From positions 178,894,057 through 178,958,056 of the forward strand of contig NC_092374.1 in NCBI RefSeq assembly GCF_030028105.1: a stretch of DNA of 64,000 nucleotides. Direction: 5' to 3'. Source of the stretch: Mobula birostris (taxonomy: Eukaryota). A model generated the notes under the pieces. It searched no databases, was not told the origin of the DNA, and saw nothing but the letters and a program-made list of their open reading frames with translations. Positions 3,373 to 52,260 of this stretch are shown here, piece by piece; position 1 is the stretch's first letter; each line of letters starts with the position of its first letter. A program made the position numbers and the translations under genes.

Positions 3373-3735
3373 TTACAAACAAGAGAAAATCTGCAGATGT
3401 TGGAAGTCCAAGCAATACACACAAAATGCTGGAGGAGCTCAGCAGGTCAAACAGCATCTATGGAAAAGGGTATCATCAATGTTTTGGGCCAAGATCCTTC
3501 ATCAGGACTGGAGAGAAAAAAAGATAAGTCAGAGTTAGAAGGTGGGGGAAGGGAAGGAAGAAACAGAAGGCGATAGGTGAAACTGGAAGGGGTGAAGTAA
3601 AGAGCTGGGAAGTTGATTGGTGAAAGAGATACAGGGCTGGAGAAGTGGTTATCTGATGGGAGAGGATAGAAACCCATGGAAGAAAGAAAAGGGGGCGGAG
3701 CACCGGCGGGAAGTTTGCCATGTGAGGTGACATTA
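3373..3735 (-). mobile_element. Penelope-like terminal (pLTR) fragment with a degenerate hammerhead at 3476-3510
   Basis: Terminal motif tctgcagatgttgg...acacaaaatgctggaggagctcagcagg is shared with the other PLE ends. The minus strand has CTGATGA...ccc-AAAAC (GAAA mutated). Confidence 0.8.
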
Positions 3736-4169
3736 AGCAGGTTAGGTAGCTTTTGAGGAAAGGGAGCTTTGAGATTTCCATACAATGGTGTCAAATTTAT
3801 TGTCATATGTACAACTGCTATGAAAAATTTGCAGCAGGGTCACAGGCACATAGCATTAGAGACATAACATTGACAAGAAGAATATAAATTAGACAAGAAG
3901 GAAAACAATCACGACAAACAAAAATCCATCGTAGTACAAAGTTCTCACAGTGTTGCCATACAGAGGGAGTGATTAAGGTCGTCATTAGGGAAAAAAGGAC
4001 TTTCATGTCATCAAATGACCTGGGGTTGATTGACCTTGTGTTTTGATATGTGTAGTTTGCACATTTTCCTGGTGAGTGTTTGGGTGCTTGATGGTTGGCA
4101 TGAATGTGATGGGCCAAAGGGCCTGTTGTGTGACTCCACCAGCAGCTCTGCTGTGAACTGCCCAAGAGC

Positions 4170-4450
4170 TGTTTGTGCTGACCATAAAGCAGCCATCTGC
4201 ATGAGCCATATCTACATGAACACCATGCTTCATTCTCCCCATCCTCCCCAGGTTGTACAGTACCATTTTCCATACACTCGGGGCAACTTACAGTTACATC
4301 TTTGCGACGTGGGAGGAAACAGGAGAATGCTGGGGAATTCTGCACGGTCACAGGGAGAACTTGCAAACTCCACATCAACAGCACCTGTGTTCAGGATTGT
4401 ACTAGAGTCACTGGAGCTATGAGGTAGTGACACTATGCTGCTGCTGGTTT
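4170..4450 (-). mobile_element. tRNA-derived V-SINE (HE1-like)
   Basis: Reverse strand matches the SINE body (gtttgc...ttctccc...cctcc...cccacgtcgcaaagatg) seen again at about 11755-12000(+), 28470-28640(-), 48040-48310(-), 52865-53115(+) and 53960-54190(-). The family name comes from recalled shark SINE structure. Confidence 0.65.
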
Positions 4451-4934
4451 GCAATGATAATTGAGGAGGAGGATCTGAACGGATTCAGGTTAATATGTTG
4501 TGGTAGCGGTCGATAGATAATTGGGTAAGGAGCCAGAGAAATATTTCAGTTTCCCTGAGGAGTGGCACAACACAGCAATGTGGTGCACGCCTAGCTGCCC
4601 CCTCAGGAATGATAAAGAATAATTAATAGGAACAATGGTAGGGATAGCCACATCCTATGTGAGAGGGTTCAGATGAACCAGCAGGGAAAGTTTTATCACA
4701 ATGCACAAAGTTTACAAAATGGGTAAATTTCATCCTGTACTGCAAGATAACATTAGCACTTCAGTCACACACAATAATGAGAGATACTAGATACTGAGTC
4801 CCAGCACAGTGAACAACATACTACTAGTGAACTATGGGGAATAGGGATGAGTACATGAGCATTTTGTCACTGTGGAGTATCACAAGCCAGTACTGTCTGG
4901 GTGGGTGGGTATTCATTCTGAAACTCCGGATTAA

Positions 4935-5107
4935 TTTTTGATACTGTGTGACTGTAGCTTGGTCTTTGATACCATGAGAATAGGGGTTGGGTATTTAATA
5001 TCACAGGACTGGGGTTGGGTCTTTGAAACTGTGAAACTGGCAAGTGGGTCTTTAATACTGGGATCTTAAGTTTGGGTCTTTACTCTGAAACTGTGGACCG
5101 GGGTTTG
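4935..5107 (+). repeat. Degenerate ~28-29-nt minisatellite, about 6 units
   Basis: Recurring tcttt(g/a)a(t/a)actg...ggggttggg units. Confidence 0.6.
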
Positions 5108-5399
5108 TTATAATTTTGTGCGACACTGAACCCCAACAATTATCCATTGCCCCACGCCACTCATTTAAGTTTGAAAATAAGGAGCTGAAGAGAAAGGGAG
5201 CTCGGAGAGAAGCAACGTGGGAATAGGCTCTTTGGCTCACCCAGTACATAAGCACCCATTTACGTTCATACTAAATTCATCTGTAGTTTTATTTTCCCCA
5301 CATTGTCAGCAGTTCCCCTCTTTCTGTCACTCACCTACACAGTTGAAGTGATTTACAGAACGTGTGCCATACGATTGTTCATTGCACTATAGTTTACTG

Positions 5400-9700: not shown

Positions 9701-10874
9701 ATTTGCCGAATCCCCTGGAGAATACAAAAGCGCCAGTTCATTTAGTCAGGCTGCGAACCGCAGCAATAGCATTTCAGAAGAAGTGTGTCTACTAGGGTAT
9801 CTCGAAGTTTGGTGAGCTGCCTGCAAAACAACATTGTTGGTCACTGGATACATTTTGCAATGGGTGTGATTACACCGGAAAGGGTGCAGGAGAGTTATCA
9901 GGATGTGGTCTGGGATAGAGCATCATGGATAAGCTGGGTTTATTTTCATTGGAGTAGAGAAGCTTGATATGTACAAACCTATCAGGGGCATTGATTGGAT
10001 AGATAGTGCACAGACGGAGAACTGTGTGCAGTTCTGACCTCCCGACTACAGCAGTCTAGAGGATACTTACAGAGATATTAGCATGTCTGGATAGCTGGAT
10101 AGGAGAGTCTGACTAGGCTGGGGTTGCCTGATACACTGAGCAGAGTTATAGCTTAATTGTATAAAGTCCTGAAGCCCAGACACATTTAAGAGAGGAGGCC
10201 CTTGCTGGAGGTTGAGAACTAGGACACATGCATTTTATGTTGGTTTTGACTTCCCTTGTCAGCCATGGTTGCATCATTCTGCCTTTAGTATACTTCTTCT
10301 TGGTATGTATCTATCCTGGTCCTTCTGAATTAATCACAGAAACTCCAGCCATTCCTTGACTCTAATTGATCCACCTGTTGCTTGCCAGCTCCTGTCTCAG
10401 CCCACCCTCTCCCATCTTTATACTGGTTATCTTTTGGCCCTGATGGATGATCTTGGCCCAAAACAATGTCCACCCCCTTTCCTCCACTCACGTTGCCTGA
10501 CATGCTGAGTTCCTCCAGCAGCTTGTTTATTCCAGAATCTGCAGTCTCTTGTGTCTTTAGGGTTTATGGGGACTTGCACCCAAATGCTTCCTCATGACCC
10601 AGGTATGTGCAAGTTAGCTTCACCACAGGCAAATAAATGTCATGCTCTCATTGTCAAGGTCAAGGTTGCCTTCGCACTCACACCTTCAGAATCATTCTGG
10701 GCCGTAACTGCTAGTGGATGCCATGGTCACTGGATTGAGGGATTAGGCAACACAATGACACAGCTAGTGGAAACCTGCCTGACAGCACTGGAGACCCAAG
10801 TTCAATGCTGCTCTCAGACTCTATCTGTGTGGAGTTTGTACTGTGACTATATAGGTAAATTGATAATAGAAGCT

Positions 10875-11350: not shown

Positions 11351-12737
11351 TATAGTGTCCCCACCAATATAGTAACCAAACCAATAATAAATTGGTTTAT
11401 TATTGTCACATGTATTGAGATACAATGAAAAACTGAACTGAGAACATTCAGGCATGACTGGTATGTGGTCAGTAATGTTCATGCCAGCCGTACAGAGATC
11501 ATTTTGTTACAACAGTACACTGAGGCAGTAGAAGGGAAAACTGTAATAACAGAGTGCAGAATAAAACGGTACAGTTACAGTACTGAGAAAGTGTGGTGCA
11601 TGCAGATAATCAGATGCAAGAGTCCATCTTATTATTCTAGGTGACCATTCAATAGTCCTATAACAGCACAGCAGAAACTGTCTTTGCACCTGGAGATATG
11701 CGACTTTAGGCTTTTGTGGTGGGGGTGGGGGAGGGGATTGCAGAAGACAGAACATTAGGTGTGGTTTTTCCCCTGGTGCTCCAATTTCCTCCACGTCCCA
11801 AAGACGTGTGGGTTAGTAGGTTAAGTTGTCATTATAAGTTGCCTCTTCTCTTCAGGTGAGAATGTGTGGTGTATTAACAACACTAGAATTAATACAGGAT
11901 TAGTGTAAATGGGTAGTTGGTGGACAGTATGGACGCACAGGGCCAAAGGGCCAGTGCATCCAAACTGACCGTCATGCTTCCATTGCTGTATCTTTCCATA
12001 ACTCTTAAGGTAGGTGTGTGAAAAGAATAAGGATAGTATATGTAATTTGTCTGGAGGCAGAGGCAACGGGAGAATTTGAATGCAGATGCTTCAGAGGCTG
12101 TTGATGCCTCAAGAAAGACACATGCACTCATGTATTCAGCAATAACCAGCATCCTGAAGCTCAGCAGGTTCCAGATCAGATAAGAATCTCAGTCTAATAT
12201 TACTTCCATCGCAAGATCAATTTGGGATGTCCACTGATAATCTCGTAATGTTCAATTCCATTTGCAACCACTAAGAACGATGAAGCAGTCTGAGCCTGTG
12301 CACAGAAAAATACAGGGAACATACAAGCATGACTGGTACGTAATACCTATATGCTCAGTGATGTTCATGCTACGTAAGTGTAACATGATCAACAAAAGAA
12401 ATATTAACAACTCCTCTATTAACACAATATTAAAGCAAGATATTCCATAGTGAAAGTGTCTAAAGGTAGAGGGGTCCTGCAGTTCTGGTGGGCACACTGC
12501 AGGAAGGATGTGATTGCACACAGGAGGGAGCAGAGGGGATTCACAAGGAAGTTGTTAGTTATGAGGAGAGACTGGATAGGCTGAACTTGTTTTCCTTGGA
12601 GAGGAAGAGGCTGAGGTGATACCTGAATTTGAAGGGCATAGATAGGATAAGGAGGAGGGAATATTTTTTATAGAGGAGATGCTTATGACTGGAAGACATG
12701 GGCTTAGGGCAAGGGGTAAGAGATTTAGAGATACAAG

Positions 12738-13100
12738 AGATTCTGCCAACACTGGAAATCTTGAGAAACACACACAAAATACTGGAGGGACTCAGCAAGT
12801 CAGGCAGCATCTAAGGAGGGGAATGAACAATTGATGTTTCGGGCTGAAACCCTTCATCGTGACTGGAAAGAGGCCAGAGACCAGAATAAGATGTTGGGGG
12901 GTGGGGGGAGAGGGGGAGTTGTACAAGCTGGAAGGTAAGACCAAGTGAGGGGGAGGGTGGAAGGTGGGTCTGGACGATAAAGTGAGAAGCTTGGAGGTGG
13001 TAAGTGGAAGAGGTAAAGGGCTGAAGAAGAGGGAATTGAATAGGAGAGGATAGTGGACCATGGAATAAAGGAAGGAAGAAGGGAACCAGAAGGAGGGTCT
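12738..13100 (-). mobile_element. Penelope-like pLTR fragment with a degenerate hammerhead at 12829-12865
   Basis: Same terminal motif; minus strand reads gtcacgatgaagggtttcagcccgaaacatcaa. Confidence 0.8.
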
Positions 13101-14275
13101 GAGAAATAACTTTTACCATCAAAACTGTGCAGAATACCTCAAGCATGTCTAACAAATGTTTTAGAAAACTGTAATGTGACATCCCTGATGACATATTCTA
13201 TGCCACAGCAAATAAAGATAGCCGAACAGTGGCATATCTAAGGTATGGCAGATATGCCACGTGCCTTGGGCACCACTTGAAGGGGGTGATAAGCACTAGG
13301 ATGGCCTTATTTCAGAGCATTGTGCAAGAAGACCTTGAAATGTTTCTTCACAAAGAGAAGCAAAGTGGAGCTGAAGGATGGAAGAGACGAAAGTTGGAGG
13401 CGGAGGAAGCCAAGAAGTCAAGCAAGTTCTTCATGCCCTTCTTTGAAAAGCCCGGAACAAGTAGTTCGACACGTTCCTTGGACTCGCCTGCACCTGCTAC
13501 AAGTTTGTTAGAATCCGAAGGTGGATCAAGTACAAATGCATCACAAGCCGAGGAGGAAGTCAAGTCAGTTAAATCCGAGTATGACGAAATTAAGAGTGAG
13601 GCTGCCACAGAAGACGTGGACATGACAGGAGGGGAAGACAATGGTGGTGATGATAATGTTGAGTTTATTGACGAGATTTTACCTGATGAGATTGAACCTG
13701 ATGACACTGAATCCAGTGAACTGGATGGTGTCAAAGAGCCTAGAACTGTCATACCAGAAGTGATTGAACAGCCTGACATTGGACTTCTGAAGTTCGACGA
13801 GGATACTGGAAAAGCAATTCTGCCTGACGTGTTGAGAACAAAAATAATAAAGCTGGGTTTGAAGTATTTCCAAGATAGTGAGGGACCTTTCCTACCAACA
13901 AATAACCACTCAATGAACAAAACTTGGTTCAAGAGGAAATTAGGAAATGGTCATGGTGAGGAAGTGACTCACTCATGACTGGTCTATTCCCCTTTTTAAA
14001 AAGTCTGCATTTTGTATCTGTTGTCTTCTCTATTCCTGGTCAGACCATCAATCCTCATTGGAGCAGGAAAGTGGATTCAACCAGTGGAAAGCACCTGAAA
14101 GGAGTGGTGTTCATGAAAATGCCAAGAATCATCGGGAATGCTTCACACAGTGGAAAGAAATGGAAAGAAATTTAGCTGGAAACAGAGGAGCTATTGATGC
14201 GGTATTTCAGTCACAGATTGAGAAGGAGAAGCAGAAGTGGCGTGATATCTTGATGAGAAACCTTCACTGCATAAA

Positions 14276-14862
14276 CACAAAATACTCTGCAGATGCTGGG
14301 GTCAAAGCAACACTCACAACACGCTGGAGGAACTCAGCAGGTCGGGCAGCATCCGTGGAAATGATGAGTTGATGTTTCGGACCAGAACCCTTCATCAGGA
14401 CTGTAGAGGGAAGGGGCAGAGGCCCTATAAAGAAGGTGGGGGGAGGGTGGGAAGGAGAAGGCTGGTAGGTACCAGGTGAAATACCAGTAAGGGGAAAGAT
14501 AAAGGGGTGGGGGAGGGGAAGCAAGAAGGTGATAGGCAGGAAAGGTGAAGAAAGAATAGGGGAAAACACAATCGGTAGTAGAAGGAGGCGGAACCATGAG
14601 GGAGGTGATAGGCAGCTGGGGGAGGGGGCAGAGTGACATTGGGATTTCCGGTAATTCCCTCCCCCTCCCTTCTTTCCCCTTACTGGTTTTTCACCTGGTA
14701 CCTACCAGCCTTCTCCTTCCCACCCTCCCCCCACCTTCTTTATACGGCCTCTGCCCCTTCCCTCTACAGTCGTGACAAAGGGTTCCGGCTCGAAACGTCG
14801 ACTCATCGTTTCCACGGATGCTGCCCGACCTGCTGAGTTCCTCCAGCGTGTTGTGAGTGTTG
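14276..14862 (-). mobile_element. Penelope-derived fold-back element with a 14-bp TSD
   Basis: CTTCACTGCATAAA at 14262-14275 and 14863-14876. Inverted arms at 14308-14499 and 14671-14862. Removing it rejoins the hAT frame (MRNLHC-IKFLRTQ). Confidence 0.92.
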
Positions 14863-15641
14863 CTTCACTGCATAAAATTCCTTAGGACTCAGAACCCGGC
14901 TTTGCGAGGACACAGGGATTCTCTTCAGCTAGACGATGACTCCAACATGGGAAATTTCCTTGGCTTACTGAAACTACTGGCCATCTTTGACCCTGTCATA
15001 AAAAGAACACCTCACTCATCTGAAAGGTTATCCTGGATCCACGTCTTATCTTTCACCCGGCGTCCAAAACAAATTCATCCACATGGTGGCATCCACTGTT
15101 CGCCAGAGTTTACTGAGAAGCATTCGTAAAGCCAAGTACTTTGTACTATGGTCTCATGTTCTACTCGACTCCAGATCAGGCACACCTTGAGCAGATGTTA
15201 AAAGTAGTGAGGTATGTGGAAGTTGATTTTGAGAGGAAAACAGTCCGTGTTAGAGTGTCCTTCCTTGGTTTTATCCAAATAAGCCAGAAGGATGCTGAGG
15301 GCTTGGTTGAAGACATCTTGAAACAGCTAGAGAAGGATGAAATGGAGCTACAAGATTGTCGGCCACTGTGCGATGACAATGCTGATGTGATGGCTGGACA
15401 CGAAGTGGTGTTCATCAAAGAATAACTGAGAAAAACAACCTGGCAGTGTTTGCGAATTGCGGCAATCACTCACTCAACTTGGTGTGTGCACATGCAGTCA
15501 AGCAGGATACAACGATGGTCACGTTTTTTGGAACCATCGAAGCTCTCTACGTGTTTTTCCCCTCGTTCAACACAGCGCTGGGAAAAACTCAAAAACGCCG
15601 TACCTGTGGTCGTTAAGTCAGAGTCCGAAACCAGGTGGAGT

Positions 15642-17896: not shown

Positions 17897-18449
17897 TTGT
17901 TCAGGGGCACAATTTCAGTGCTTGCCATAGGCGCTATTTTCCATAGATACCTCCCTGCAGTCAAAAGACATTGACCTCCCTCAACACCCTATCAATCAGT
18001 GATGCCATGTTCAAAGATTCCTGGAAATATCCCAAGCTTTCTTTGTCAACCAACCAACCATAGTCTTACAATTTACTTTCCATGCCCTACTTTTGTTTGC
18101 CCTCCATAGATGTTACATGACTTTATGAGTTCCTCCAGCATTTTGTGCATGTTGCTCAATATTTCCAACACCTGCAGAACCTCGTGTATCTGTCCAAATG
18201 TCTTATAAATGTAATGTGCACCACTGCCTCTGGCAGTTCATTTTAGATAGCCCTACCCATTTGAATGGAAAATCTTGACCCTCAAATCCCATTTAACATT
18301 CCCCACTCTCACCTTAAATATACGCTCTCAGGTTCTAAACTGCCCTGTCCTGGGAAAGGGACTCTGTCTATTATCTAAATAGGACTATCTGTCCTATTTT
18401 TGTATCTCACAAACTTATAAACCATACAATGTTCCTCCTATGTTTTAGT

Positions 18450-20590: not shown

Positions 20591-22324
20591 ATAGAACATA
20601 GAACATAGAATAGTACAGCACAGTACAGGCCCTTCGGCCCACAATGTTGTGCTGACCCTCAAACCCTGCCTCCCATATAAGCCCCCACCTTAAATTCCTT
20701 CAGATACCTGTCTAGTAGTCTTTTAAACTTCACTAGTGTATCTGCCTCCGCCACTGACTCAGGCAGTGCGTTCCACGCACCAACCACTCTCTGAGTAAAA
20801 AAACTTCCTCTAATATACCCCTTGAACTTCCCACCCCTTACCTTAAAGCCATGTCCTCTTGTATTGAGCAGTGCTGCCCTGGGGAAGAGGCACTGGCTAT
20901 CCACTCTATCTAATCCTCTTATTATCTTGTACACCTCTATCATGTCTCCTCTTATCCTCCTTCTCTCCAAAGAGTAAAGCCCTAGCTCCCTTAATCTCTG
21001 ATCATAATGCATACTCTCTAAACCAGGCAGCATCCTGGTAAATCTCCTCTGTACCCTTTCCAATGCTAACACATCCTTCCTATAGTGAGGCGACCAGAAC
21101 CGGACACAGTACTCCAAGTGTGGCCTAACCAGAGTTTTATAGAGCTGCGTCATTACACCGCGACTCTTAAACTCTATCCCTCGACTTATGAAAGCTAACA
21201 CCTCATAAGCTTTCTTAACTACCCTATCCACCTGTGAGGCAACTTTCAGGGATCTGCGGACATGTACCCTGAGATCCCTCTGTTCCTCCACACTACCAAG
21301 TATCCTGCCATTTACTTTGTGCTCTGCCTTGGAGTTTGTCCTTCCAAAGTGTACCACCTCACACTTCTCCGGGTTGAACTCCATCTGCCACTTCTCAGCC
21401 CACTTCTGCATCCTATCAATGTCTCTCTGCAATCTTCGACAATCCTCTACACTATCTACAACACCACCAACCTTTCTGTCGTCTGCAAACTTGCCAACCC
21501 ACCCCTCTACCCCCACATCCAGGTCATTAATAAAAATCACGAGAAGTAGAGTACCCAGAACAGATCCTTGTGGGACATCACGAGTCACAATCCTCTAATC
21601 TGAATGTACTCCCTCCGCCATGACCCTCCGCCTTCTGCAGGCAAGCCAATTCTGAATCCACCTGGCCAAACTTTGCTGGATCCCATTCCATAAGCCTACT
21701 GTGTGGAACCTTGTCAAATGCCTTACTAAAATCCATACAGATCACATCCACTGCACTACCTTCATCTATATGCCTGGTCCCCTCCTCAAAGAACTCTATC
21801 AGGCTTGTTAGACATGATCTGTCCTTCACAAAGCCATGCTGACTGTCCCTGATCAGACCATGATTCTCTAAATGCCCAGAGATCCTATCTCTAAGAATCT
21901 TTTCCAACAGTTTTCCCACCACAAACGTAAGGTTCACTGGTCTATAGTTACCCGGACTATCCCTATGACCTTTTTTGAACAAAGGGACAACACTCACCTC
22001 CCTCCACTCCTCCGGTACCATTCCCGTGGACAACGAGGACATAAAGATCCTAGCCAGAGGCTCAGCAATCTCTTCCCTCGCCTCGTGGAGCAGCCTGGGG
22101 AATATTCCGTCAGGCCCCGGGGACTTATCCGTCCTAATGTATTTTAACAACTCCAACACCTCCTCTCCCTTAATATCAACATGCTCCAGAACATCAACCT
22201 CACTCATATTGTCCTCACCATCATCAAGTTCCCGCTCATTGGTGAATACTGAAGAGAAGTGTTCATTGAGGATCTTGCTCACTTAATACCGAAGAGAAGT
22301 ATTCATTGAGGACTTCGCTCACTT
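20591..22324 (-). mobile_element. Younger 5'-truncated CR1 LINE
   Basis: Long ORFs 21578-22282 (234 aa) and 20659-21588 (309 aa; VPQGSVLG, FADD motif) with one frameshift; (ctatgtt)n tail at 20591-20612. Confidence 0.95.
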
Positions 22325-23611: not shown

Positions 23612-24094
23612 TAAAATATTTATACAGTTTATCCGTCACTTTCTTGTTCTACATCACTACCTCTCCAGTATCATTTTCCAATGGTCCAATATCCACTCTT
23701 GCACCTATTTTACACTTTTTGTATCGGAAGAAACTTTGGTATTTTCTTTGATTAGCTAGCTTACTTTTATATTCCATCTTTTCATTCCGAATGACTTTTT
23801 CAGTTGGTTTCTCAAAGCTTCCGAATTCTCTAACTTCCTGCTAATTTTTTGACCTATTATACACCCTTTCTGGCTTTTATGTTGGCTTTGACTTCTCTTG
23901 TTAGCCATGGTTGAGTCTTGACTTTCAGGTACTAATTCTCTTTGGGATGCATATATCCTGTGCCTTCTAAATAGCTTCCAGAAATTCCAGCCATTGCAGT
24001 TCTGCTGTCATCCCTGCCAGTGTTCTTTTCTAATCAATTCAGGGAACCTAGGGTTCCTCTCCTGTGTGATGTCTGAACCGGTCTCCCTCGCTTC

Positions 24095-24740
24095 GGACAG
24101 AGCGCAGTTGTTCAGCAAAACGATCTCCCAGTCTGCGTCGGGTCTCGCCAGGAAAAAGCAGGATCTCCCAGTGGCCACACATTTTAATCCCACATCCCAT
24201 TCCCATTCTGACATGTCTATCCACAGCCTACTGTAAAGATGAAGCCACACTCAGGTTGGAGGAACAACACCTTATATTCCATCTGGGTAGCCTCCAACCT
24301 GATGGCATGAACATTGACTTCTCAAACTTCCGCTAATGCCCCACCTCCCCCTTGTACCCCATCCATTATTTATTTATATACATACATTCTTTCTCTCTCT
24401 CTCCTTTTTCTCCCTCTCATGCCCATCCTCTGGGCCCCCCCTCCCCCTTTTCCTTCTCCCTGGGCCTCCTGTCCTATGATCCTCTCATATCCCTTTTGCC
24501 AATCACCTGCCCAGCTCTTGGCTCCATCCCTCCCCCTCCTGTCTTCTCCTATCATTTTGGATCTCCCCCTCCCCCTCCCACTTTCAAATCTCTTCCTTCA
24601 GTTAGTCCTGACGAAGGGTCTTGGCCCGAAACGTCGACTGTACCTCTTCCTAGAGATGCTGCCTGGCCTGCTGCGTTCACCAGCAACTTTGACGTGTGTT
24701 GCTTGAATTTCCAGCATCTGCAGAATTCCTCGTGTTTGCG
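24095..24740 (+). mobile_element. 5'-truncated Penelope-like element (GIY-YIG C-terminus plus pLTR) with a short 5' inversion
   Basis: KQDLPVATHFN..SHSHSDMSIH..KDEATLRLEEQHLIF matches the 31.5-31.7 kb PLE. About 24095-24141 is antisense ORF sequence. Confidence 0.9.
24604..24639 (+). ncRNA. Minimal type-I hammerhead ribozyme motif, intact core
   Basis: agtc CTGACGA a GGGT-cttg-GCCC GAAAC GTC gact: stem I agtc/gact, stem II, GAAA and GUC triplet (predicted cleavage after 24635). Activity not demonstrated. Confidence 0.85.
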
Positions 24741-28066: not shown

Positions 28067-31000
28067 TTTTCTCTTTGACTGTTTACGGAGGGTTATGGAT
28101 ACTGATAGGTGTACAAACAAGTATTTAGTTTATAATTTCACATGTACATTAGTTGAGACAGCAGATGTAGTTGTAAGCAAATATAGATTCTCTCTGTGCC
28201 TAATTGATCATTATTATTGAAGAAAAATGGTTGTAACACTACATAACCTTCATGTGTCCCTCTCCCACTACCTTGACGGATATCTGGATATGGCAGTCCA
28301 ATGTTTCTCTGTGCCACTTTGCATCCTCCATTTATCCGAAGTGCTTTTGCACTCCATTAACTACCCTGCGCTAAATTCTGTCTCTCACATTTCAGAGAAT
28401 CATACAAACATAAACAGGTCCTTCGGCCATGCCAAACATCAACTTCCCATTTTCCACTGCCCATATACCCATCATCTGCCCCTGCCTACACTAACGGGTA
28501 ATTTACATTGCCCAGTTAATCTACCAAATTGCAAGTCTTTGGATGTGGGAGAAGACAGGAACACCTGGGAAGACCCACATGGGCACAGTGATAACATGAA
28601 ATTTTTACACCGACAGTGTCAGAAGTCAGGATTGGACTCTAGGCCACTGCAAAACTGGTGGCTCTACCAGCTCTGCTAAAGGTTCCTTCTCGTGACATTG
28701 AACTTTCACCCTCACTATCAACCATATTGCTACTTTTGATATCACTGGGAAACTTAACAGTGGCTCTGACATTAATATCTACCATGAAAAACAGGGGAAT
28801 TAATAGCCTGGTGCACCAAGTCCTCCCGCAGCTAAAGTATTGCCTTTTGCTCTCTCTCTGTGAGCCAATTTTTCATCTGACATTATACTTTTCTTGAAAC
28901 CTCTGCTCTACTACTTCCTGATCTATCTGCCAAATGCCTTCCCAAAAATCTCATAGACTACATCAAATACACCACTGTCATCACCTTCAAAGAATCTTTA
29001 AATTCTGCAATCGTTCGTGCAGATTAGAGAATAACAAACATAAATGGAAGGAGAGAGCATGACTACAGCTTGTTAGCCCAATGTCACAGAAGGAAAATGC
29101 TGGAATCTATACTGAATCCCAAGTTAACATAAAGCTTGAAAGGAATATTAGAACTGAGCAGAGTCAGGGTGGATTTGGAAGGGAGAATCAATTTTGACTA
29201 ACCCGTTGGAGTCCTTTAAGATACCACTAGTAGAGTAGAGAAGGGAGAACCAACGGATATGATCTATTTAGGAATATCATACAGCTCTCAATGAGGTTGT
29301 ACACAAGATCACTTTTTATATGAGGGATATAGATAGGGTGAATGTTTGCAGGCTTTCTGCACTCAGATTGTGTGAGACTAGAAACATAGAAAACCTCCAG
29401 CACAATACAGGCCCTTCAGCCCACAAAGCTGTGCTGAACATGTCCTCACCTTAGAACTACCAAGACTTACTCATAGTCCTCTATTTTTCTAAGCGCCATG
29501 TATCCATCTGTGAGGATCTTAAGAGACCCTATCATTTCCGCCTCCACCACAGCCGCCGGAAGCCCATTCCACACACTTACCACTCTCTGCATAAAAAGCT
29601 TACCCCTGATATCTCCTCTGTACCTACTTCTAAGCAGCTTAAAAATATGCCCTCTTGTGCTAGCCATTTCAGCCCTGGGAAAAAGCCTCTGAGTATCCAC
29701 ACGATCAATGCCTCTCATTATTTTGTACACCTCTATCAGGTTACTTCTCATCCTCTGTCGCTCCAAGGAGAAAAAGTTGAGTTCACTCGACCTATTCTCA
29801 TGAGGCATGCTCCCCAATTCAGGCAACATCCTTGTAAATCTCCTCTGCACCCTTTCTATGGTTTTCACATTCTTCCTGTAGTGAGCGACCAGAGTTGAGC
29901 ACAGTACTCTAAGTGGGGACTGATCAGAGTCCTATATAGGTGCAACATTACCTCTCGGCTCCTAAAATCAATCCTGCGATTGATGAAGGCCAATACCCCA
30001 TGTGCCTTCTTAACTACAGAGTCAACCTGCGTAGCAGCTTTGAGTGTCCTCTGGACTTGGACCCCAAGATCCCTCTGATCCTCCACACTGCCTAGAGTCT
30101 TACCATTAATACTATATTCTGCCATCATATTTGAGCCACCTCACACTTATCTGAGTTGAGCTCCATCTGTTACTTTTCAGCCCAGTTCTGGATCCTATCA
30201 ATGTCCCGCTGTAACCTCTGACAGGCCTCCACACCATCCACAACACCCCCAACCTTTGTGTCATCAGCAGATTGACTAACCCATGCCTCCACTTCCTCAT
30301 CCAGGTCATTTATAAAACTCACAAAGGTAGGGGTCCCAGAACAGATCCCTGAGGCACACCACTGGTCATCGGCCTCCATACAGAATATGACCTGTCTACA
30401 ACCACTCCTTACCTTCTGTGGGAAAGCCAGTTCTGGATCCACAAAGCGATGTCCTCTTGGATCCCATGCCTGCTTACTTTCTCAATAAGCCTTGCATGGG
30501 GTACCTTATCAAATGCCTTGCTAAAATCCATACACACTACATCGATGGTTCTACCTTCATCAATGTGTTTAGTCACATCCTCAAAAAATTCAATCAGGCT
30601 CGGAAGGCATGACTTGCCTTTGACAAAGCCAATGCTGACTATTCCTAATCATATTATGCCTCTCCAAATGTTCATAAATTCTGCCTCTCAGGATCTTCTC
30701 CATCAACTAACCAACCACTGAAGTAAGACCCACTGGCCTATAATTTTGCTGGGCTATCCTTACTCCCTTTCTTGAATACTGGAACAACATCCGCAACCCT
30801 CCAATCCTCCGGAACCTCTCCCGTCCTCATTGATGAAGCGAAGATCATCCCCAGGACCTCAGCAATCTCCTCCCTCGCTTCCCTCAGTAGCCTGGGGTAC
30901 ATCCCGTCTGGTCTTGGTGAATTATCCAAATTCATGCTTTCCAAGATCTCCAGCACAACCTCTTCCTTAATAGCTACATGCTCAAGCTTTTCAGTCCGTT

Positions 31001-31074: not shown

Positions 31075-32866
31075 CAAACAACAGGAATTCTGCAGATGCT
31101 GGAAATTCAAGCAACAGACACCAAAGTTGCTGGTGAACGCAGCAGGCCAGGCAGCATCTCTAGGAAGAGGTACAGCCGACGTTTCAGGCCGAGACCCTTC
31201 ATCAGGACTAACTGAAAGAAGAGTTAGTAAGAGATTTGAAAGTGGGAGGAGGAGGGGGAGATCGAAAATGATAGGAGAAGACAGGAGGGGGAGGGATGGA
31301 GCCAAGAGCTGGACAGGTGATTGGCAAAGGGGATATGAGAGGATCATGGGACAGGAGGCCCCGGGGAGAAAGACAAGGTGGGGGAAAATGCAGAGGATGG
31401 GCAAGGGGTATAGTCAGAGGGACAGAGGGAGAAAAAGGAGAGTGAGAGAAAGAATGTGTGTATAAAAATAAATAACGGATGGGGTACGAGGGGGAGGTGG
31501 GGCATTAGTGGAAGTTAGAGAAGTTGATGTTCATGCCATCAGGTTGGAGGCTACCCAGACGGAATATAAGGTGTTGTTCCTCCAACCTGAGTGTGGCTTC
31601 ATCTTTACAGTAGGCTGTGGATAGACATGTCAGAATGGGAATGGGATGTGGGATTAAAATGTGTGGCCACTGGGAGATCCTGCTTTCACTGGCAGACAGA
31701 GCGTAGGTGTTCAGCAAAGCGGTCTCACAGTCTGCATCGGGTCTCGCCAATATATAAAAGGCCACATCGGGAGCACCGGACGCAGTATATCACCCCAGCC
31801 GACTCACAGGCGAAGTGTTGCCTCACCTGGAAGGACTGTCTGGGGCCCTGAATGGTGGTAAGGGAGGAAGTGTAAGGGCATGTGTGGCACTTGTTCCACT
31901 TACAAGGATAAGTGCCAGGAGGGAGATCAGTGGGGAGGGATGGGGGGAATGAATGGACAAGGGAGTCGCGTAGAGAGTGATCCCTGCGGAAAGCAGAGGG
32001 GTGGGGGGAGGGAAAGATATGCTTAGTGGTGGGATCCCATTGGAGGTGGCGGAAGTTACAGAGAATAATATGTTGGACCCCGAGGCTGGTGGGGTGGTAG
32101 GTGAGGACCAGGGGAATCCTATTCCTAGTGGGGTGGCGGGAGAATGGAGTGAGAGCAGATGTACGTGAAATAGGAGAGATGCATTTGAGAGCAGAGTTGA
32201 TAGCGGAGGAAGGGAAGCCCCTTTCTTTAAAAAAGGAGGACATCTCCCTCGTCCTGGAATGAAAAGCCTCATCCTGAGAGCAGATGCGGTGAAGACGGAG
32301 GAATTGTGAGAAGGGGATGGCATTTTTGCAAGAGACAGGTTGAGAAGAGGAATAGTCCAGATAGCTGTGAGAGTCAGTAGGCTTATAGTAGACATCAGTG
32401 GATAAGCTGTCTCCAGAGACAGAGACAGAAAGATCTAGAAAGGAGAGGGAGGTGTCGGAAATGGACCAGGTAAACTTGAGGGCAGGGTGAAAGTTGGAGG
32501 CAAAGTTAATAAAGTCAACGAGCTCAGCATGTGTGCAGGAAGCAGCGCCAATGCAGTCGTCGATGTAGCGAAGGAAAAGTGGGGGACAGATACCAGAATA
32601 GGCATGGAACATAGATTGTTCCACAAAGCCAACAAAAAGGCAGGCATAGCTAGGACCCATACGGGTGCCCATAGCTACACCTTTAGTCTGGAGGAAGTGA
32701 GAGGAGCCAAAGGAGAAATTATTAAGAGTAAGGACTAATTCCGCTAGACGGAGCAGAGTGGTGGTAGAGGGGAACTGATTAGGTCTGGAATCCAAAAAGA
32801 AGCGTAGAGCTTTGAGACCTTCCTGATGGGGGATGGAAGTACATCGGGACTGGACATCCAGACCAG
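31075..32866 (-). mobile_element. Penelope-like element (RT plus GIY-YIG), 5'-truncated, 12-bp TSD
   Basis: 397-aa ORF with GVAMGT..GPSYACLFVG, LRYIDD and VIYCVRCSRCGLLYIGET (stop TGA where G is expected). TTAAGTACTTCT at 31063-31074 and 32867-32878. Removing it rejoins CR1 AEVLN-EYFAS. Confidence 0.95.
31174..31209 (-). ncRNA. Minimal type-I hammerhead ribozyme motif in the PLE pLTR, intact core
   Basis: Minus strand agtc CTGATGA a gggtctcggcct GAAAC GTC ggct. Confidence 0.82.
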
Positions 32867-35289
32867 TTAAGTACTTCTGCCATCTCTTCCGGTTCCATAC
32901 ACACTTTTCCACTGTCACACTTGATTGGTCCTATTCTCTGATGTCTTATCCTCTTGCTTTTTGCATACTTGTAGAATGCCTTGGGGTTTTCCTTAATCCT
33001 TCTCATGGTCCCTTCTGGCTCTCATAATTTCATTCTTAAGCTCCTTCCTGCTAGCCTTATAGTCTTCTAGATCGCTATCATTACCTAGATTTTTGAACTT
33101 TTCATAAGCTCTTCTTTGCTTCTTGACTAGATTTAGAACAGCCTTTATACACCATGGTTCCTGTACCCTACCATCCCTTCCCTGTCTCATTGGGACTTAC
33201 TTGCAGAACCCCACACAAATATCCCCTGAACATTTGCCATATTTCTTCCCTACGTTTCCCTGAGAATATCTGTTTCCAATTTATGCTTCCATGTTTCTGC
33301 TTGATAGCCTCATATTTTCCCTTACTCCAATTAAACGTTTCCCTAATTTGTCTATCCCTCTCCAAAGCTATGGTAAAGGAGATAGAATTGTGATCACTAT
33401 CTCCAGAATGATCCCCGACCGAGAGACCTGACACCTGACCAGGTTCATTTCCCAATACCAGATCACGTACAGCCTCTCCTCTTGTAGGCTTATCAACATA
33501 TTGTATCAAGAAACCTTCCTGAACACGCCTAACAAACTCCACCACATCTAAACCCTTCCCAATCAATATTTGGGAAATTAAAATCTCCCATCGCAACAAC
33601 GCTGTTATTATTACTCCTTTCCAGAATCTGTCTCCTTATCTGCTCCTCGATGTCCCTGTTTCTATTGGGCGGCCTATAAAAAACACGCAGTGAAGTTATT
33701 CACCCCTTCCTATTCCTAACTTCCACCCACAGAGACTCCGTAGACAACCCCTCCATGACTTCCTCCTTTTCTGCAGCCTTGACACTATCTCTAATCAACA
33801 GTGCCACACCCATCTCTTTTGCCTCCCTCCCTATCCTTTCTGAAACATCTAAAGTCTGGCACTTGAAGTAGCCATTCCTGCCCCTGCACCATCCAAGTCT
33901 CTGTAATGGCCACAACATCATAGCACCAAGTGCTGATGCATGCTCTAAGCTCAACCGCTTTGTTTAAAACTCCTTGCATTAAAATAGACACATCTCAAAC
34001 CATTGGACTGGGTGCATCCCTTCTCTTTCACCTGCTTATCCTCCCTTTTACACTGTCTCCAAGCTTTCTCCATTTGTGAGCCAACCTCCCTTTCCTCCAT
34101 CACCTCAGTTCGTTCCCCCCCCCCAGTAATTCTAGTTTAAACTCTCCCCAATAGCCTTAGCAAACCTCCCAGCCAGGATATTGGTCCCCCTCAGAATCAA
34201 GTGCAACCTGTCCTTTTTGTACAGATCACACCTGCCCCAGAAGAGGTCCCAATGATCCAGAAATCTGAATCCCTGCCTCCTGCTCCAATCCCTCAGCCTC
34301 GCATTTATCCTCCATCTCCTTCTATTCATATTCTCACTGTCACGTGGTCCAGGCAGTAGTCCTGAAATTACTACCTTTGAGGTTCTGCTTCTCAACTTCC
34401 TTCCTAACTCCCTGTAGTTTGCTTTCAGGAGCTCCGCCCTTTTCCTACCTATGTCGTCAGTACCAATATGTACCACGACCTCTGGCTCGTCTCCTTCCCA
34501 CTTCAAGGTATCGTGGACGTGACCAGAAACATCCTGGACCCTGGCATCTGGGAGGCAAACTACCATTTGTGTTCCTTTGCTGCGTCCACAGAATCGCCTG
34601 TCTGACCCCCTAACCACAGAGACCCCCTAACTACTACCATCTCCTTCCTTTCCCTACCCTTCTAAGCTACAGGGCCAGACTCTGTGCCAGAGCCGCAACC
34701 ACTGTTGCTTTCCCCTGGTTGGCCATCTCCCCCAACAGTACTCAATCAGGAGTAGTTATTGTTAAGGGGGACAGCCACTGGGGTACTCTCTAGCACCTGC
34801 TTCTTGCCCTTCCCTCTCCTGACTGTTACCCACTTATCTGTCTCCCCAGGCCTCAGACCTATAGCTCCTCTCTGTCACCTCCTCAGTCTCCCTGACCAGA
34901 CGAAGGTCACCGAGCTGCATCTCTAGCTCCCTAACGCAGTCCCTAAGGAGCTGCAGCTCGACACACCTGGTGCAGATGTGGCCATCTGGGAGGCTGGGAG
35001 TCTCCAGGACCTCCCACATCTGACACCAAGCACAGAAAACTAGAACTGGAAGTTTAAGGGTTGGAGTGAATGGCAAAATATTTAATGCAAATCAAAGGGG
35101 GAAATTCTTCAATCAGAGGGTAGTGAGAGTGTGGAATGAGCTGCCAGTGGAAATGGTAGATGTGATCAGTTGTAACATACTGTATAAGCAGTTAATACTG
35201 GTAGGACAGGACACTTCGAGAGAGAGGAAACTAGTTCTGCCATTCCTTAGATGGAACACTAACAGTATGTCTACAGCATGTAGGTTATT

Positions 35290-45817: not shown

Positions 45818-45915
45818 TAGAATTTTAAATTTAGTTTGATTATGTTTTGAATATGGTGTGATATTAATGAACAGATTTCCTGGGAGGTGTAATTTTTGTT
45901 ACCTATTGTTCACAG

Positions 45916-46051
45916 CCTACAGATGATATTGTGCTGATGGCTCAGACTCTGGAGAAACTTTTTCTACAGAAAGTGGCACAGATGCCCCAGGAGGAAGTGG
46001 AACTAACACCAGCTCCAAAATCAAAACATTCTAAAGGCCGCAAGACCGGGG
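45916..46051 (+). CDS. BRD2: BRD2 exon 4 (end of BD1)
   Basis: [27 protein letters not shown]...; phase-1 donor GTAAGG. Confidence 0.97.
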
Positions 46052-46319
46052 GTAAGGGCAAGCATTGGCATCAGAATGTACCTTTTTTTTGTTACTTAAA
46101 TTTGGAAACAGTGGCAGCTGAGAACCTTCAACTCAAAATGTTATCTGTTCCGTCTTCCACAGATCTCTGTTTCCGACATTTTGGTTTTATTGGCACCCAT
46201 TCTTTTATTATCTTAAACTTTAATTAGCTTTTCCCTTAAACATCTGTATCTTAAATGCATTCCTGATTTGTATAATTTTCCTTTATAATTAAACAATTAA
46301 AGTTAGTGTGCCGTTCTGA

Positions 46320-46900: not shown

Positions 46901-47304
46901 AAGCACTGTGCTCCTTGGAAGTTTTTTTGTATTCTTACTGCTTTTGAGTTTCTAATTGTCAGCATCTGCTACTCTTTTTAAATTTGTGTTTCTTGGTTAT
47001 AGGTTGGGAGTCTGGAACTCTTGCTTCAATTATATAAACTGAGCACTAATGCATGTCCATGCATTGCCTAGCTAATAATGAAATTTTGCTTTCTTGGTAT
47101 CACATTGCTTCATACTATCAATCTATAAAACTTAAATTTGCCCAGAACTAGGCTTTTGATATCTGCAGGCCTTGAATCTGCAGTTGGAGGCCTTCATGTT
47201 ACATCTGCTACTAGGAGAGTTACCTGCATTAACCTTCTAACCATGTTTTCCCTTGAATACTTGTACCTCAAATTACCTCTAGTAAGAGAACATAATCGAA
47301 TTAG

Positions 47305-47507
47305 TGCAACACACACAAAATGCTGGTGGAACGCAGCAGGCCTGGCAGCATCTATAGGAAGTACAGTCAAAGTTCCTGACGAAGGGTCTCGGCCCGAAAC
47401 GTCAACTGTACCTCTTCCTATAGATTCTGCCTGGCCTGCTGCGTTCCACCAGCATTTTGTGTGTGTTGGTTGAATTTCCAGCATCTGCAGATTTCCTTGT
47501 GTTTGTG
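47305..47507 (+). mobile_element. 203-bp Penelope-derived fold-back mini-element carrying a hammerhead core (47376-47403) in BRD2 intron 4
   Basis: Arms 47307-47368 / 47404-47468, tail 47469-47507, flanks TAATCGAATTAG / TAATCTAATTAG (12-bp TSD, 1 mismatch). Core CTGACGA a GGGT-ctcg-GCCC GAAAC GTC. Confidence 0.88.
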
Positions 47508-49143
47508 TAATCTAATTAGAGGCTACTTCTACACAACTATTTCCTACCACCTGCCTCATTCACCGTTTCTCTTTTTGTTGTTAATTCAGTCTTGACAAAA
47601 CCAGTATCAGAGCAAAGAACTAAGGCCCCTTCAGCTATCCATTACTAATGGCTGCTTTGTTATATTCTCCAAGTTTGTTGGTTTGGAACTGGCTATTTAG
47701 TTTACTGCATGTACTCTGTATAAAGTGTTTCCAATAGTTGGGTCACACTTGCCCTGCTCTGTTTTGTTTAGGTTTTTCTATTCTTATATTAACTTTATCA
47801 CTACATCATTTTGTTTGTGGCTTGGGTAGTCCAGGTTCCATCTTTTGGTCCTGTTCTTTAAGTTAACTCCTTGAACTTGATACCTCTTAGCTATTCACAT
47901 TTTATTGATCTTGAGAGGGATAGTGACTAGATCTTGCCTTCAATACCATTTCAATTTGATCTGAAATTCCCTTCCCCTAGCATAATATAGGCATAGTTCC
48001 TTACTGGTTTGTGTGCATTGCTTGTGGATGATAATCATTCATTAGTTTATTTAGTTATACGGTGCACAGTAGGACCTTCTGGCCCTTCGAGCAGCACTGC
48101 CCCAGCAACCCCATTTAACCCTAACCTACTCACAAGACACTATACAATAACCAGTTCACCTACCTGGTGTGTTTTTATACTGTGTGAGGAAACCAGAGCA
48201 TCTGGGGAAAACCCACGCAGTCCATGGGGAGGATGTACAGGCTCCTTGCAGATGACACTGAATTAAACTCCAATGCCCTGAGCTGTAATAGCGTTGATCT
48301 AACTGCTACGCTGCCTTCTCGTTTACATTTCCCCTGAGGTGTACATTTTTGCACATGACAGTCCTATGCTGCCACCACACTCCTGAATTCTGCCTGTAGG
48401 ATGAAGTAAACTGTCCAATTACTGCATCCATGAATATCAAATGCCTTAATTTCCACTCTAGTGACTGTTATTTTTGCCATTTTTATTTTCAAGTAAAGTA
48501 AACACCCACTGAATGACTATTTTAAATGCAGTTTTAAGCATGCATGAGCTGGTGCAGGAGTCAAAGGCAGAACCTTAGTACATCTTGTCTGTGACCAGAT
48601 TCTCATCTGTCATCTATTTAAGATAGTTTTAATTGAAATTTATGTTGACTACATGCCACATTGATTTGTAGTCCAGTAGTAATTCTCTTTGATCTGCTCC
48701 TTTTTTGTTTTCTTTGTGAATAAATAGACTTCACAATAAACATCCTGATATGCCAAATGTGGTCAGTTGTACAGTTTTACTATCCTCTTATCCATACCCA
48801 AGATTTGCATTTAATCCATCGTAGAATTATACTTGAATGAAAATGGGAAGGGAGTTGATGCTGTGCCATTTCATGATGAACACATGCGTGTCAACTGATC
48901 CTAGAGTTTTATCTTGTAACTGTCTCCTTGCTGACGTTTTGTCACCGAGTGATGTTGGTTACTAGAAGATTCTAGGAACATGATCATGCCTTGAATTCTG
49001 AAAATGGATGTTGCCCATTTTAGGGTTTGAATACATTTATTATTTGGGGGGGGGGAAGGATTGAAGTCCATTTAAAATATAGTATACCAAATAGTTACCT
49101 GTGTTGAGTGAGTTTTTAAATACTTATTGGTGCTTTTCTACAG

Positions 49144-49364
49144 GTGTGCCTTCTGCTCCTGGAGGAGTGACTGTATCTCAAGTCCCAATGGTATCGTCAG
49201 CGTCTCAACCAACTGCCTACTCTCCTCCAACACCAGAGGTACCCACACCTGTGCTTGAAGTGTCTCAGACTTCAGTTATATCTACACCAACTGTACACAA
49301 GTCTTCGCATTCTCCACCTCAGTCTGCTTTGGCAGTACCACCTCCTGCACAACCTGTCACAAAG
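49144..49364 (+). CDS. BRD2: BRD2 exon 5 (inter-bromodomain linker)
   Basis: SQVPMVSS..YSPPTPEVPT..PPAQPVTK; phases 1 and 0 fit; donor GTAAGC. Confidence 0.95.
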
Positions 49365-49934
49365 GTAAGCAGGTCTCATAATTGAGGGTGGAGGATCAGG
49401 TTGGGGGGGGGGGTGTAGCTGGAGAAAAGAGAGTACTTTGAAAGAAAGTAGCTTTCGACATATATAATGTGATCTAATGTCTTGTTAAGAAAGAGGAATG
49501 TTGGTTAATGAGCTTCCAGTAGTAGTTCAGTGGTTATTTATAATATTGTAATAATTAAAATATTAGCAGAATGTTACATTATTTTGTAGTTCCTTCTCAG
49601 TGACTATCATGGGGCACTTGAAACAACCTGCTTCCCAAAAAGAAAGTATTAGCTCTGCTTTTGAGTTCATTGTTGTCTGTCATCCCTTGCTGAATAATTT
49701 TACTCCAGATAAGTTGTCCTAATGTGTGCTTTTATGCTTTGTGGCAGATGGGTGTTTGGTCTTGTATATGATGCTTTCATTTACCTATTTCAGTTATTGT
49801 TTTCCATACTTTGCAAGTAATAGATTGACATGCCAGAGGAAGATTATCAGCCCTTTTTAAGTGATGGCAGTGGTTACTTTGCTATAATCGTGTTCCTAAC
49901 TGGGTGGAGGCTTTAGAAATTTTCATTTGATCTT

Positions 49935-50390
49935 TATAAGACCTTAAGTTATATTAGGCCATTTGGTTCATCAGGTCTGCTCCATTCCATCATCCCTCTC
50001 ATTATCCCTATCAATACCACACTCCTGCTGTCTCTTTGTCTTCATTACCTTTAATGCCCCTACTAATCCAGAACCTGGACCTGTCAGCCTCCACTTTAAA
50101 TATGATTGTGCAGATTCAGCATCCTCTGGCTAAAGAAATTCCTCCTCATTTCTGTTCTAAAGGGATGTCACTCTATTCTGATGCTGTGCCCTCTGGTCCT
50201 AGTATCGCCCACTGTAGAAAATATCCTCTCTCCATCCACTCTATCTCGGAGTTTCAAATTTCATTGAGATCTCCCCTCGTTTTTCTAAACATGGTCAAAT
50301 GCTTTTCACGTGTTAACCCTTTAATTCCTGTAATCTTTTGGATAAGGGACTCAAAACTATTTGCAGTACTCCATGTGCGGCATCGTTGAT
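49935..50390 (-). mobile_element. Old CR1 3' fragment in BRD2 intron 5
   Basis: aagaccttaag...ggccatttggttcatcagg tail-side sequence as in the other CR1 copies. Confidence 0.65.
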
Positions 50391-50645
50391 GGACCATTTT
50401 TTAAAAAAAAATTGTAAATCTTCAGATTTGGAGGCTCTTGGGGAAATGCGTAGTGGGTTCTTTATAGAATGTGTTCCATGGGGTTTGTAAGCTTGTGACT
50501 GCAAAGCGTAGGCTGGTATCTTAAAATGTCTGTTAATAGCTTGTAGTTTTATTTTTAGTGTTGACTTGGTGGAGAAAAGTTTGCTACTTTATTCATTGTG
50601 AGCAATAATGCAATTACTATGAGTAATAGATTCTGTTCTTTACAG

Positions 50646-51008
50646 AAGAAAGGAGTGAAGAGGAAAGCAGATACAACAACTCCAACCACCTCAGTTGTCA
50701 CTACAAGTGGCGAGTCATCTCCTTCGGTAACTGAAAGCAAAGCTGCAAAGATTCCAGTTAGGCGTGAGAGTGGCAGACCAATCAAACCACCAAAGAAAGA
50801 CTTGCCAGATTCCCAGCAGCATCAGAGTTCGAAAAAAGGCAAACTGAGTGAACAGCTGAAGTACTGCAATGGCATCTTGAAGGAGCTTCTGTCAAAGAAA
50901 CATGCAGCATATGCTTGGCCCTTTTATAAACCTGTGGATGCCAAAGCTCTTGGGCTTCATGACTACCATGATATTATCAAGCATCCCATGGACCTGAGTA
51001 CTATAAAA
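50646..51008 (+). CDS. BRD2: BRD2 exon 6 (motif A and start of BD2)
   Basis: [13 protein letters not shown]...[55 protein letters not shown]. Confidence 0.98.
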
Positions 51009-52166
51009 GTATGTTGCATCCAAGCAACACATTCTCAAATCATCATATTGTTTATACTTGGATACAGTGAAACCTGTACGCTCAACTGGTTCCTATCTTC
51101 ATGGTTCTGTTTCTCAGCCAAGGGCTTTTCTCACAAAATTAATTGTCTAGCTCCCACTGTAAGCAATTCTCTACCATTGAGGTAACATTTTTTGTTTCTT
51201 TAAAACAAAAAGAAACTAGTAATTTTTCATGGGATGAACTTCAAGTTTAATCAACCTTTTTTCCCTTCAGTCTCAAAGATGACTACTGAATGCAGGTTTC
51301 ACTGTACCTTTATAACTGAATTTCTTGGCACACTGTTGTGCTGTTGGCTACATACTCTTGCTTGGAAATGGGTGTATGCACATTTGTTTACTCGTGCAGA
51401 TATGTGGAAACATTTCAAGTTCTTACTCAGATCCTTCTGTGCCTTTGGACATTGCAACTTTTCCAAGCTGAATGAACTGCTAACAGCTCAGAAAAGTCTG
51501 AGCTATGATTCATAAATTCAAGTAGCAGTATTAGAAGATGCAGTTAGCCTGAACATTGAAACTAGAGTATTTCCAGTGTTAACTTTTTTCAAAAAAAAAA
51601 GAGTACAGATAACGCTGAACTTCTAGACAGGAATAATTAAAGTGTACTGTGAACAAAATTCAGCCACATGCTAGATACGCAGAACTACCTGCTGTTTGCC
51701 ATGGTGGAATCTTAGTGCCGTGGCATGGTACTGGTGTTCCTTGAAATTGAGATTCACCCTCGTTCCTTTTGTCTTTTACAGAAGGCCTGACATCCTAGTT
51801 CTAGGCCTTCTCTATACATCTGAACATAACTAAGAGTTGTGTAATTTTTAGTGCCATTTTCCCTGTTTAGTAACTTCTAATTGCTGAAGCTTGAGAATAA
51901 TTGTGGAAATAATGTGTATTTGGTACTTTAAATTATAAGTTATACTATTTGGTTAATTGGAATTTTACTTCTAAAGTGGTAAGATTGTGGCTTTCTGTGT
52001 AGAATGACCTAAAGTTGCCCACCGTCATGTCTAATTGTACATAAAATGGCTAAGTGCCTGATAAACTACTTTTTGATACATATTTTAATGATGAATATAA
52101 TTATTACGTAAAGCTGCAAAATAGAACTTCCACGTAAACGTTCATAATAAATGTGGGTGTTGGCCT

Positions 52167-52260
52167 CGCAACACACTCAAAATGCTGGAGGAACTCGACA
52201 GGCCAGGCAGCACCTAGGAAAAGAGTACAATCGACGTTTTGGGCTGAAGCCCTTCAGCAG
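52167..52260 (-). mobile_element. Short PLE terminal fragment with a degenerate hammerhead in BRD2 intron 6
   Basis: gcaacacactcaaaatgctggaggaactc...tcgacgttttgggctgaagcccttcagcag. Confidence 0.8.

Follow-up and report, generated by a model that had tools for sequence, protein, structure and literature searches.

Minimal hammerhead ribozyme motifs in the 3′ modules of a Penelope-like element family of the ray Mobula birostris

Minimal hammerhead ribozymes (min-HHRs) are known from the terminal repeat region of metazoan Penelope-like elements (PLEs), where they lie on the strand of the open reading frame (ORF) (Cervera and De la Pena, 2014, PMC4209133). They are type-I hammerheads with a helix I of 4–5 bp, an unpaired base between A9 and position 10.1, a G10.1-C11.1 pair and, without any loop III, a palindromic ACGU; mostly they occur solo on truncated elements, with some nearby opposite-strand pairs. 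All of these traits recur among nine motifs in a 64-kb stretch of the genome of Mobula birostris, here called the window. An initial annotation, made from the letters of the window alone, had assigned the motifs to this class, and the assignment holds: all the published sequence features are found, a PLE ORF remnant lies upstream, and the same architecture is seen in relatives.

Endonuclease-bearing (EN+) PLEs of the Neptune and Nematis types encode a reverse transcriptase (RT) followed by a C-terminal GIY-YIG domain, with two cysteines inside the latter and a CX2-5CxxC linker (Craig et al., 2021, PMC8557442), an arrangement that the ray family shares. The nine motifs are very probably 3′ modules, each a minimal hammerhead plus a tail of 100–140 nt, of an EN+ PLE family of Neptune/Nematis type that is abundant in the ray genome, each module marking a separate insertion. 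Arkhipova is said to have dealt with EN+ PLEs of this type in 2006, and PLE minimal hammerheads are reportedly also treated by Lunse, Weinberg and Breaker in RNA Biol, as cited in PMC6765202.

Nine hammerhead sites and their decay

Site-by-site reading found the motif or a decayed form of it at all nine coordinates of the initial annotation, with the layout helix I, CUGAYGA, one extra A, a GGG-N6-CCC hairpin, GAAA, CGUC and helix I; two further searches, with a profile and with a covariance model (R1, below), agree. Unless stated otherwise, searches for hammerhead sites cover the whole window. A strict 32-nt pattern had three matches in the window and none in 100 shuffles. With a structural descriptor built after the published min-HHR one there were two full matches, 24603–24640(+) and 31173–31210(−), where 300 first-order Markov simulations give an expectation of 0.013 per window. 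An nhmmer profile of the copies recovered exactly the nine sites and two tail fragments, 18101–18193(+) and 47299–47376(−), with nothing further in the window at E < 0.1. The earlier list of nine is complete, because the profile adds only these fragments, which have no ribozyme.

The boxes of the minimal hammerhead core (C3-U4-G5-A6-N7-G8-A9, G12-A13-A14, A15.1-U16.1, and a residue other than G at 17) are intact at 24604, 31174 and 47371; the other six copies have one to four core changes each. The initial annotation had called the core intact at these same three places (the last given as 47376), which is right for the boxes and too generous for what surrounds them: helices I and II pass at 31174 with the help of G-U pairs, one of them the G10.1-U11.1 pair that arose by a CpG transition, and helix I fails at 47371, broken by an inserted base. 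The 24604 copy, with a helix I of 5 bp and a helix II of 4 bp closed by a tetraloop, is the only one to show every descriptor feature. Its predicted cleavage-site residue, C17, falls at 24635, the position assigned to it beforehand.

Other details of the motif had also been read correctly. The unpaired nucleotide between A9 and 10.1, the extra A, is an A in 9/9 copies. Stem III is reduced to the 15.2-16.2 palindrome, ACGU in five copies and ACAU, through CpG decay, in four, with no loop III. The G10.1-C11.1 pair is present in seven of the nine (G-U at 31174 and U-C at 10436 being the exceptions). The decay, by contrast, had been described as mostly CpG transitions. Within the 36-nt motif we count 54 substitutions from the majority base, comprising 19 CpG transitions (35%), 26 other transitions and 9 transversions; with just four CpG dinucleotides in the motif, CpG decay is strongly enriched at about a third of the changes, yet it is not the majority.

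The ribozyme in metagenomic relatives

A metagenome scan with a single protein query yielded no loci, while an alignment query yielded 80 loci encoding PLE relatives, mostly at 40–55% amino-acid identity. Run on these 296 kb, the descriptor gave 16 hammerheads in ORF orientation and 3 in the opposite one. The extra A, the G10.1-C11.1 pair and the CG palindrome are present in all 19, although the descriptor demands none of them. Of the 39 loci with enough downstream sequence, 16 have the core 322–384 nt beyond the point where the protein match ends. In one locus (L007) the ORF is flanked by two hammerheads, 1022–1063 and 4088–4129, separated by 3,066 nt, the classic layout of pseudo long terminal repeats (pseudo-LTRs).

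Nineteen distinct sequences from the relatives were chosen by their core boxes alone and then aligned. In helices I and II, 89.5% of cells are paired, compared with 60% after shuffling and 20–47% with slid partners, and seven of the eight helix pairs have changed on both sides. Judged from this alignment, the hammerhead helices are under selection across the PLE clade. The covariance model built from it, R1, contains no ray sequence; in an unfiltered search of the window it places the nine sites at ranks 1–8 and 10, with E-values of 1.5e-10, 9e-8, 8e-7, 5e-4, 1.5e-3, 1.5e-3, 7e-3, 0.17 and 0.94, and its only other match at E < 1 is a weak one at 2479–2497. A profile of the ray tail found no significant match in the metagenomic PLE loci. 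The ribozyme is the sole conserved non-coding part between the ray PLEs and these relatives, which at about 50% amino-acid identity argues for its importance to the element.

Two further observations concern the layout of the relatives. The mutual similarity of the L007 repeats stops about 50 nt past the ribozyme, placing the 3′ end of that element near the cut site. Four other loci (L002, L014, L042 and L066) have a second hammerhead on the opposite strand within 0.5–2.5 kb, an inverted-copy habit like that in the ray window.

The carrier and its insertions

The elements carrying the 24604 and 31174 hammerheads are 89% identical over about 610 nt (24155–24741(+) and 31075–31686(−)). Both of these long copies have, upstream of the hammerhead, the GIY-YIG endonuclease coding end together with a C-rich 3′ untranslated region (UTR); from that coding end to the hammerhead is about 270 nt, and from the hammerhead to the 3′ terminus of the repeat another 100–140 nt. 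The remaining seven, stubs of 130–400 nt, have 3′ UTR, hammerhead and tail in common. In the 31174 element, which extends to about 32880, a 397-aa open frame, 31725–32918(−), belongs to a truncated ORF with stop codons and weakly matches RVT_1. Its translation has a CX4CXXC linker, the start of GIY-YIG and two cysteines between GIY and YIG, and both linker and cysteines are retained in the consensus of the alignment. There are 658 homologues, the best from Mobula hypostoma (86–91% identity), Hypanus sabinus and Rhincodon typus; more distant ones combine PF00078 with PF01541 (GIY-YIG). A tblastn search of the window with PLE proteins found no further sizeable PLE coding remnant. By published criteria (PMC8557442) the carrier classifies as an EN+ PLE of Neptune/Nematis type, a clade assignment made from motifs and not from a tree.

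The copies form a graded series of lengths, from 130 nt to 1.8 kb, with one common 3′ end. Two insertions, 14265–14897 and 47305–47507, are fold-backs made of head-to-head pairs, and one arm of each ends about 40 nt short: the right arm in the first, and in the second the left (inverted) arm, which is missing the last ~40 nt of the tail. An imperfect target-site duplication, roughly 12 nt long, borders the second. Strong 5′ truncation, a neighbouring truncated copy in inverse orientation and a one-sided tail of 30–40 nt are the insertion signatures of the Neptune/Nematis elements (PMC8557442); the inverted copy and the one-sided tail have been explained by internal initiation of reverse transcription (PMC11167929). 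Fold-backs with one short arm, as in these two studies, support a PLE carrier. We also considered that the inverted arm of the 47305 fold-back might start exactly at the cleavage site, and rejected this, since the self-complementarity of helix I leaves the junction uncertain over about 8 nt.

Two of the nine copies, 47371 and 52231, begin at the 5′ edge of the hammerhead, nine being too small a sample for a test of clustering. Such copies would be expected if the short ones were a separate non-autonomous family resembling retrozymes or short interspersed nuclear elements, with an RNA that starts at the hammerhead, is cut and circularised, and is copied in trans by the PLE enzyme; a 2026 preprint does derive animal non-LTR retrozymes from PLE pseudo-LTRs and describes them from one cartilaginous fish (bioRxiv 10.64898/2026.07.22.740005). 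We consider this quite unlikely here. A length series with a single 3′ end is the pattern of 5′ truncation, the window has no tandem direct repeats, and cutting by the hammerhead would remove the tail, yet every copy retains it downstream of the cut site, so the copied RNAs were uncut at that ribozyme. The retrozyme-like circular RNAs suggested by the initial annotation fail on the same defining feature, tandem direct copies: the window has none, and no same-strand pair closer than 1.5 kb, the nearest such pair being 1.5 kb apart with both members mutated. It is likewise unlikely that the hammerhead-headed stubs of about 140–200 nt and the fold-backs with a hammerhead at the apex represent an independent non-autonomous lineage in which the ribozyme defines where the RNA begins, whether by dimer cleavage or by RT stopping or snapping back at the hairpin. 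If such a lineage existed, the ray would have hundreds of thousands of ribozyme units that could dimerise in trans, some of them intronic and in sense orientation.

The same two copies, 47371 in sense and 52231 in antisense, lie in introns of a BET-family gene, which has a bromodomain near 50.9 kb and an ET domain at 55204–55390. The sense orientation of 47371 could suggest that the host has co-opted intronic sense-strand copies for regulation, in which they would pair in trans and cleave pre-mRNA. This we regard as highly improbable: helix I of 47371 is broken, its nearest same-strand copy is more than 20 kb off, decay in the copies is about as fast as in the sequence around them, and there is no evidence of cross-species conservation. 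With all copies in the window solo, most of them mutated, and same-strand neighbours at least 1.5 kb apart, neither cutting nor a host role is expected of these remnants of the EN+ PLE.

The coordinates of the copies and their parts are collected in Table 1.

Table 1. Hammerhead motifs, their parts and the insertions that carry them (window coordinates; R1, covariance model from metagenomic relatives)
Feature	Coordinates	Strand	Score or remark
Minimal type-I hammerhead, full descriptor pass	24604–24639	+	R1 44.3 bits, E 1.5e-10
Helix I of the 24604 copy	24604–24607 with 24636–24639
Core CUGACGA of the 24604 copy	24608–24614
Extra A of the 24604 copy	24615
Helix II of the 24604 copy	24616–24627
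GAAA of the 24604 copy	24628–24631
ACGU of the 24604 copy	24631–24634
C17 of the 24604 copy	24635
5′-truncated PLE: GIY-YIG C-terminal coding end (stop near 24337), C-rich 3′ UTR, hammerhead, ~100-nt tail	24155–24741	+
Short inverted piece of GIY-YIG region adjoining 5′ end of the 24155 copy	24080–24150	−
Hammerhead, core boxes intact, G10.1-U11.1 and G-U in helix I, C17 at 31178	31174–31209	−	R1 34.9 bits
5′-truncated PLE, ~1.8 kb: C-terminal part of RT, CX4CXXC linker, GIY-YIG (in-frame stops), 3′ UTR, hammerhead, tail	31075–32880	−
Hammerhead, core boxes intact, two helix I pairs broken by inserted base and CpG change, C17 at 47403	47371–47408	+	R1 31.8 bits, non-standard pairs marked
Fold-back insertion, hammerhead at apex	47305–47507	.	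In BET-family gene intron, sense direction
Decayed hammerhead: 16.2 G to A, changes in helices I and II	14366–14403	−	R1 22.3 bits
Decayed hammerhead: C3 to G, G8 to A	14767–14803	+	R1 20.7 bits
Head-to-head pair of 5′-truncated copies, junction near 14655	14265–14897	.
Decayed hammerhead: C3 to A, U4 to C, 16.2 G to A; tail stub 12719–12877	12829–12865	−
Decayed hammerhead: G12 to A, 16.2 G to A, C17 to U; stub 3361–3631	3476–3510	−
Most decayed copy, 12/36 positions changed; stub 10418–10566	10436–10470	+
Decayed copy beginning at hammerhead 5′ edge: A6 to C, G12 to A; stub 52143–52279	52231–52260	−	Antisense, BET-family gene intron
Tail-only fragment without hammerhead, beginning ~12 nt past the cleavage-site position	18101–18193	+

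Several neighbouring features were recorded. Two different PLE stubs are preceded, at a distance of 40–160 nt, by a repeat of about 120 nt (10233–10353 and 23875–23995, 77% identical), which may be a favoured insertion target, belong to a composite element or be there by coincidence. Another retroelement family with RVT_1 frames has three copies, at 20659–22282(−), 29798–30986 and 62547–63709, that are 69–71% identical; judged by tblastn with PLE proteins, it is not a PLE. An open frame at 34132–34617(−) encodes a GDSL/SGNH esterase domain (PF13472, E 1e-10); the first ORFs of some long interspersed nuclear elements encode a domain of this kind, and the frame probably belongs to another retroelement. 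Within the BET-family gene, in sense, Rfam identifies the box C/D small nucleolar RNA SNORD10 at 48867–49006(+) (70.7 bits, gathering score 37). Human SNORD10 lies within an EIF4A1 intron, and the host gene here may differ from the human one.

Proposed role and comparison with known systems

What the observed motif, carrier, position and covarying deep conservation would do for a live element is suggested by published work. There the hammerhead would sit in the pseudo-LTR. A single copy would be unable to close helix III, and two copies on one tandem or read-through transcript could pair through the ACGU palindrome to form a dimer. The dimer would cut after C17 (GUC^G), probably aided by the element's own protein, and cleavage would trim the element RNA out of longer transcripts. 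The activity of min-HHRs in vitro is low and may need protein (PMC4209133; PMC6765202; PMC11167929). In the window most insertions have been cut down at the 5′ end, to 130–600 nt, and two are fold-backs.

Several points weigh against this account or parts of it. No Rfam hammerhead family (Hammerhead_1, _3, HH9, HH10, II) matched the window at the gathering score, nor the region 24560–24760 at E up to 10. Monomers and dimers folded by free energy gave a rod-like hairpin that pairs part of the core, or an extended duplex, and did not produce the hammerhead junction, a result that we regard as uninformative. Both results would suit motifs that are chance look-alikes of the hammerhead core in an ordinary repeat, with no ribozyme ancestry. 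That reading is refuted by the excess of full descriptor matches over the number expected per window, by the recovery of all nine sites with R1, a model from unrelated PLEs, and by helices that covary across the relatives while the core stays fixed. The Rfam misses are consistent with a motif that has no closed helix III, to which we attribute them. Rfam hammerhead models include a closed helix III.

Also on the adverse side, the motif is conserved no better than the tail among the window copies. Mean column identity rises from 0.61 in the 40 nt upstream to 0.83 in the motif, stays at 0.81–0.83 through the tail's first 80 nt and drops to 0.56 outside the element; the local copies thus show no selection on the ribozyme. 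The conserved unit in the window is a 3′ module of about 150 nt in which the ribozyme does not stand out from the tail, a pattern that fits neutral decay of dead copies from several subfamilies. RNAalifold on the tail found only weak structure (−4.4 kcal/mol) with almost no covariation, and no convincing conserved fold. Direct tandem copies of the terminal region are absent from the window, as is a pseudo-LTR, leaving the dimer context unseen here; since every copy in the window is truncated, their absence tells little about the family. Finally, an Anolis PLE does not need its hammerhead to insert in vitro, and the cut site of that hammerhead has no RNA-seq ends mapped to it (PMC11167929); some PLE clades thrive without hammerheads (PMC8557442), so that the role in the life cycle is unsettled.

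Nine hammerhead copies in 64 kb is a high local density. The very large genomic load proposed in the initial annotation is plausible, and is an expected corollary of an abundant EN+ PLE because each PLE 3′ end carries the motif; a PLE expansion has been described in elasmobranchs, and in whale shark introns (bioRxiv 10.1101/443036). If the local density held genome-wide, the ray genome would hold a large natural stock of ribozymes in decay, in which the erosion of such motifs could be studied.

The animal non-LTR retrozymes (PMC7229834; bioRxiv 10.64898/2026.07.22.740005) resemble the ray copies in being short non-coding units with type-I hammerheads related to those of PLE pseudo-LTRs. They differ in forming tandem direct repeats and circular RNAs and in having canonical hammerheads with a closed helix III, whereas the ray copies are dispersed, solo and of the minimal form. 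The Poseidon element PAc of Anolis carolinensis is likewise a PLE with a hammerhead, and its internal RT start leaves a tail signature that the ray fold-backs, with one arm shorter, match; the PAc hammerhead, however, overlaps the ORF start, where that of the ray lies about 270 nt after the stop codon, and PAc belongs to the Penelope/Poseidon clade, without a CxxC linker (PMC11167929). The Neptune/Nematis elements (PMC8557442) share the coding content and insertion anatomy of the ray family, and differ from what the window contains in that the latter has no full-length copy and no pseudo-LTR tandem.

The motif itself matches the metazoan PLE min-HHR (PMC4209133), with some differences. Helix II has 3–4 bp and a tetraloop in the ray copies, compared with 7–8 bp in the Schistosoma families, and the host, a batoid ray, is not named in that study. 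The nine copies per 64 kb, a figure that is local only, look denser than the genome totals given there for coelacanth (~4,000) and Xenopus (~9,000). Existing knowledge of how these ribozymes work, or what they do, is not changed by our results, which extend the known host range of PLE minimal hammerheads to include a ray. The family is a clear but ordinary new host example of the class described in 2014.

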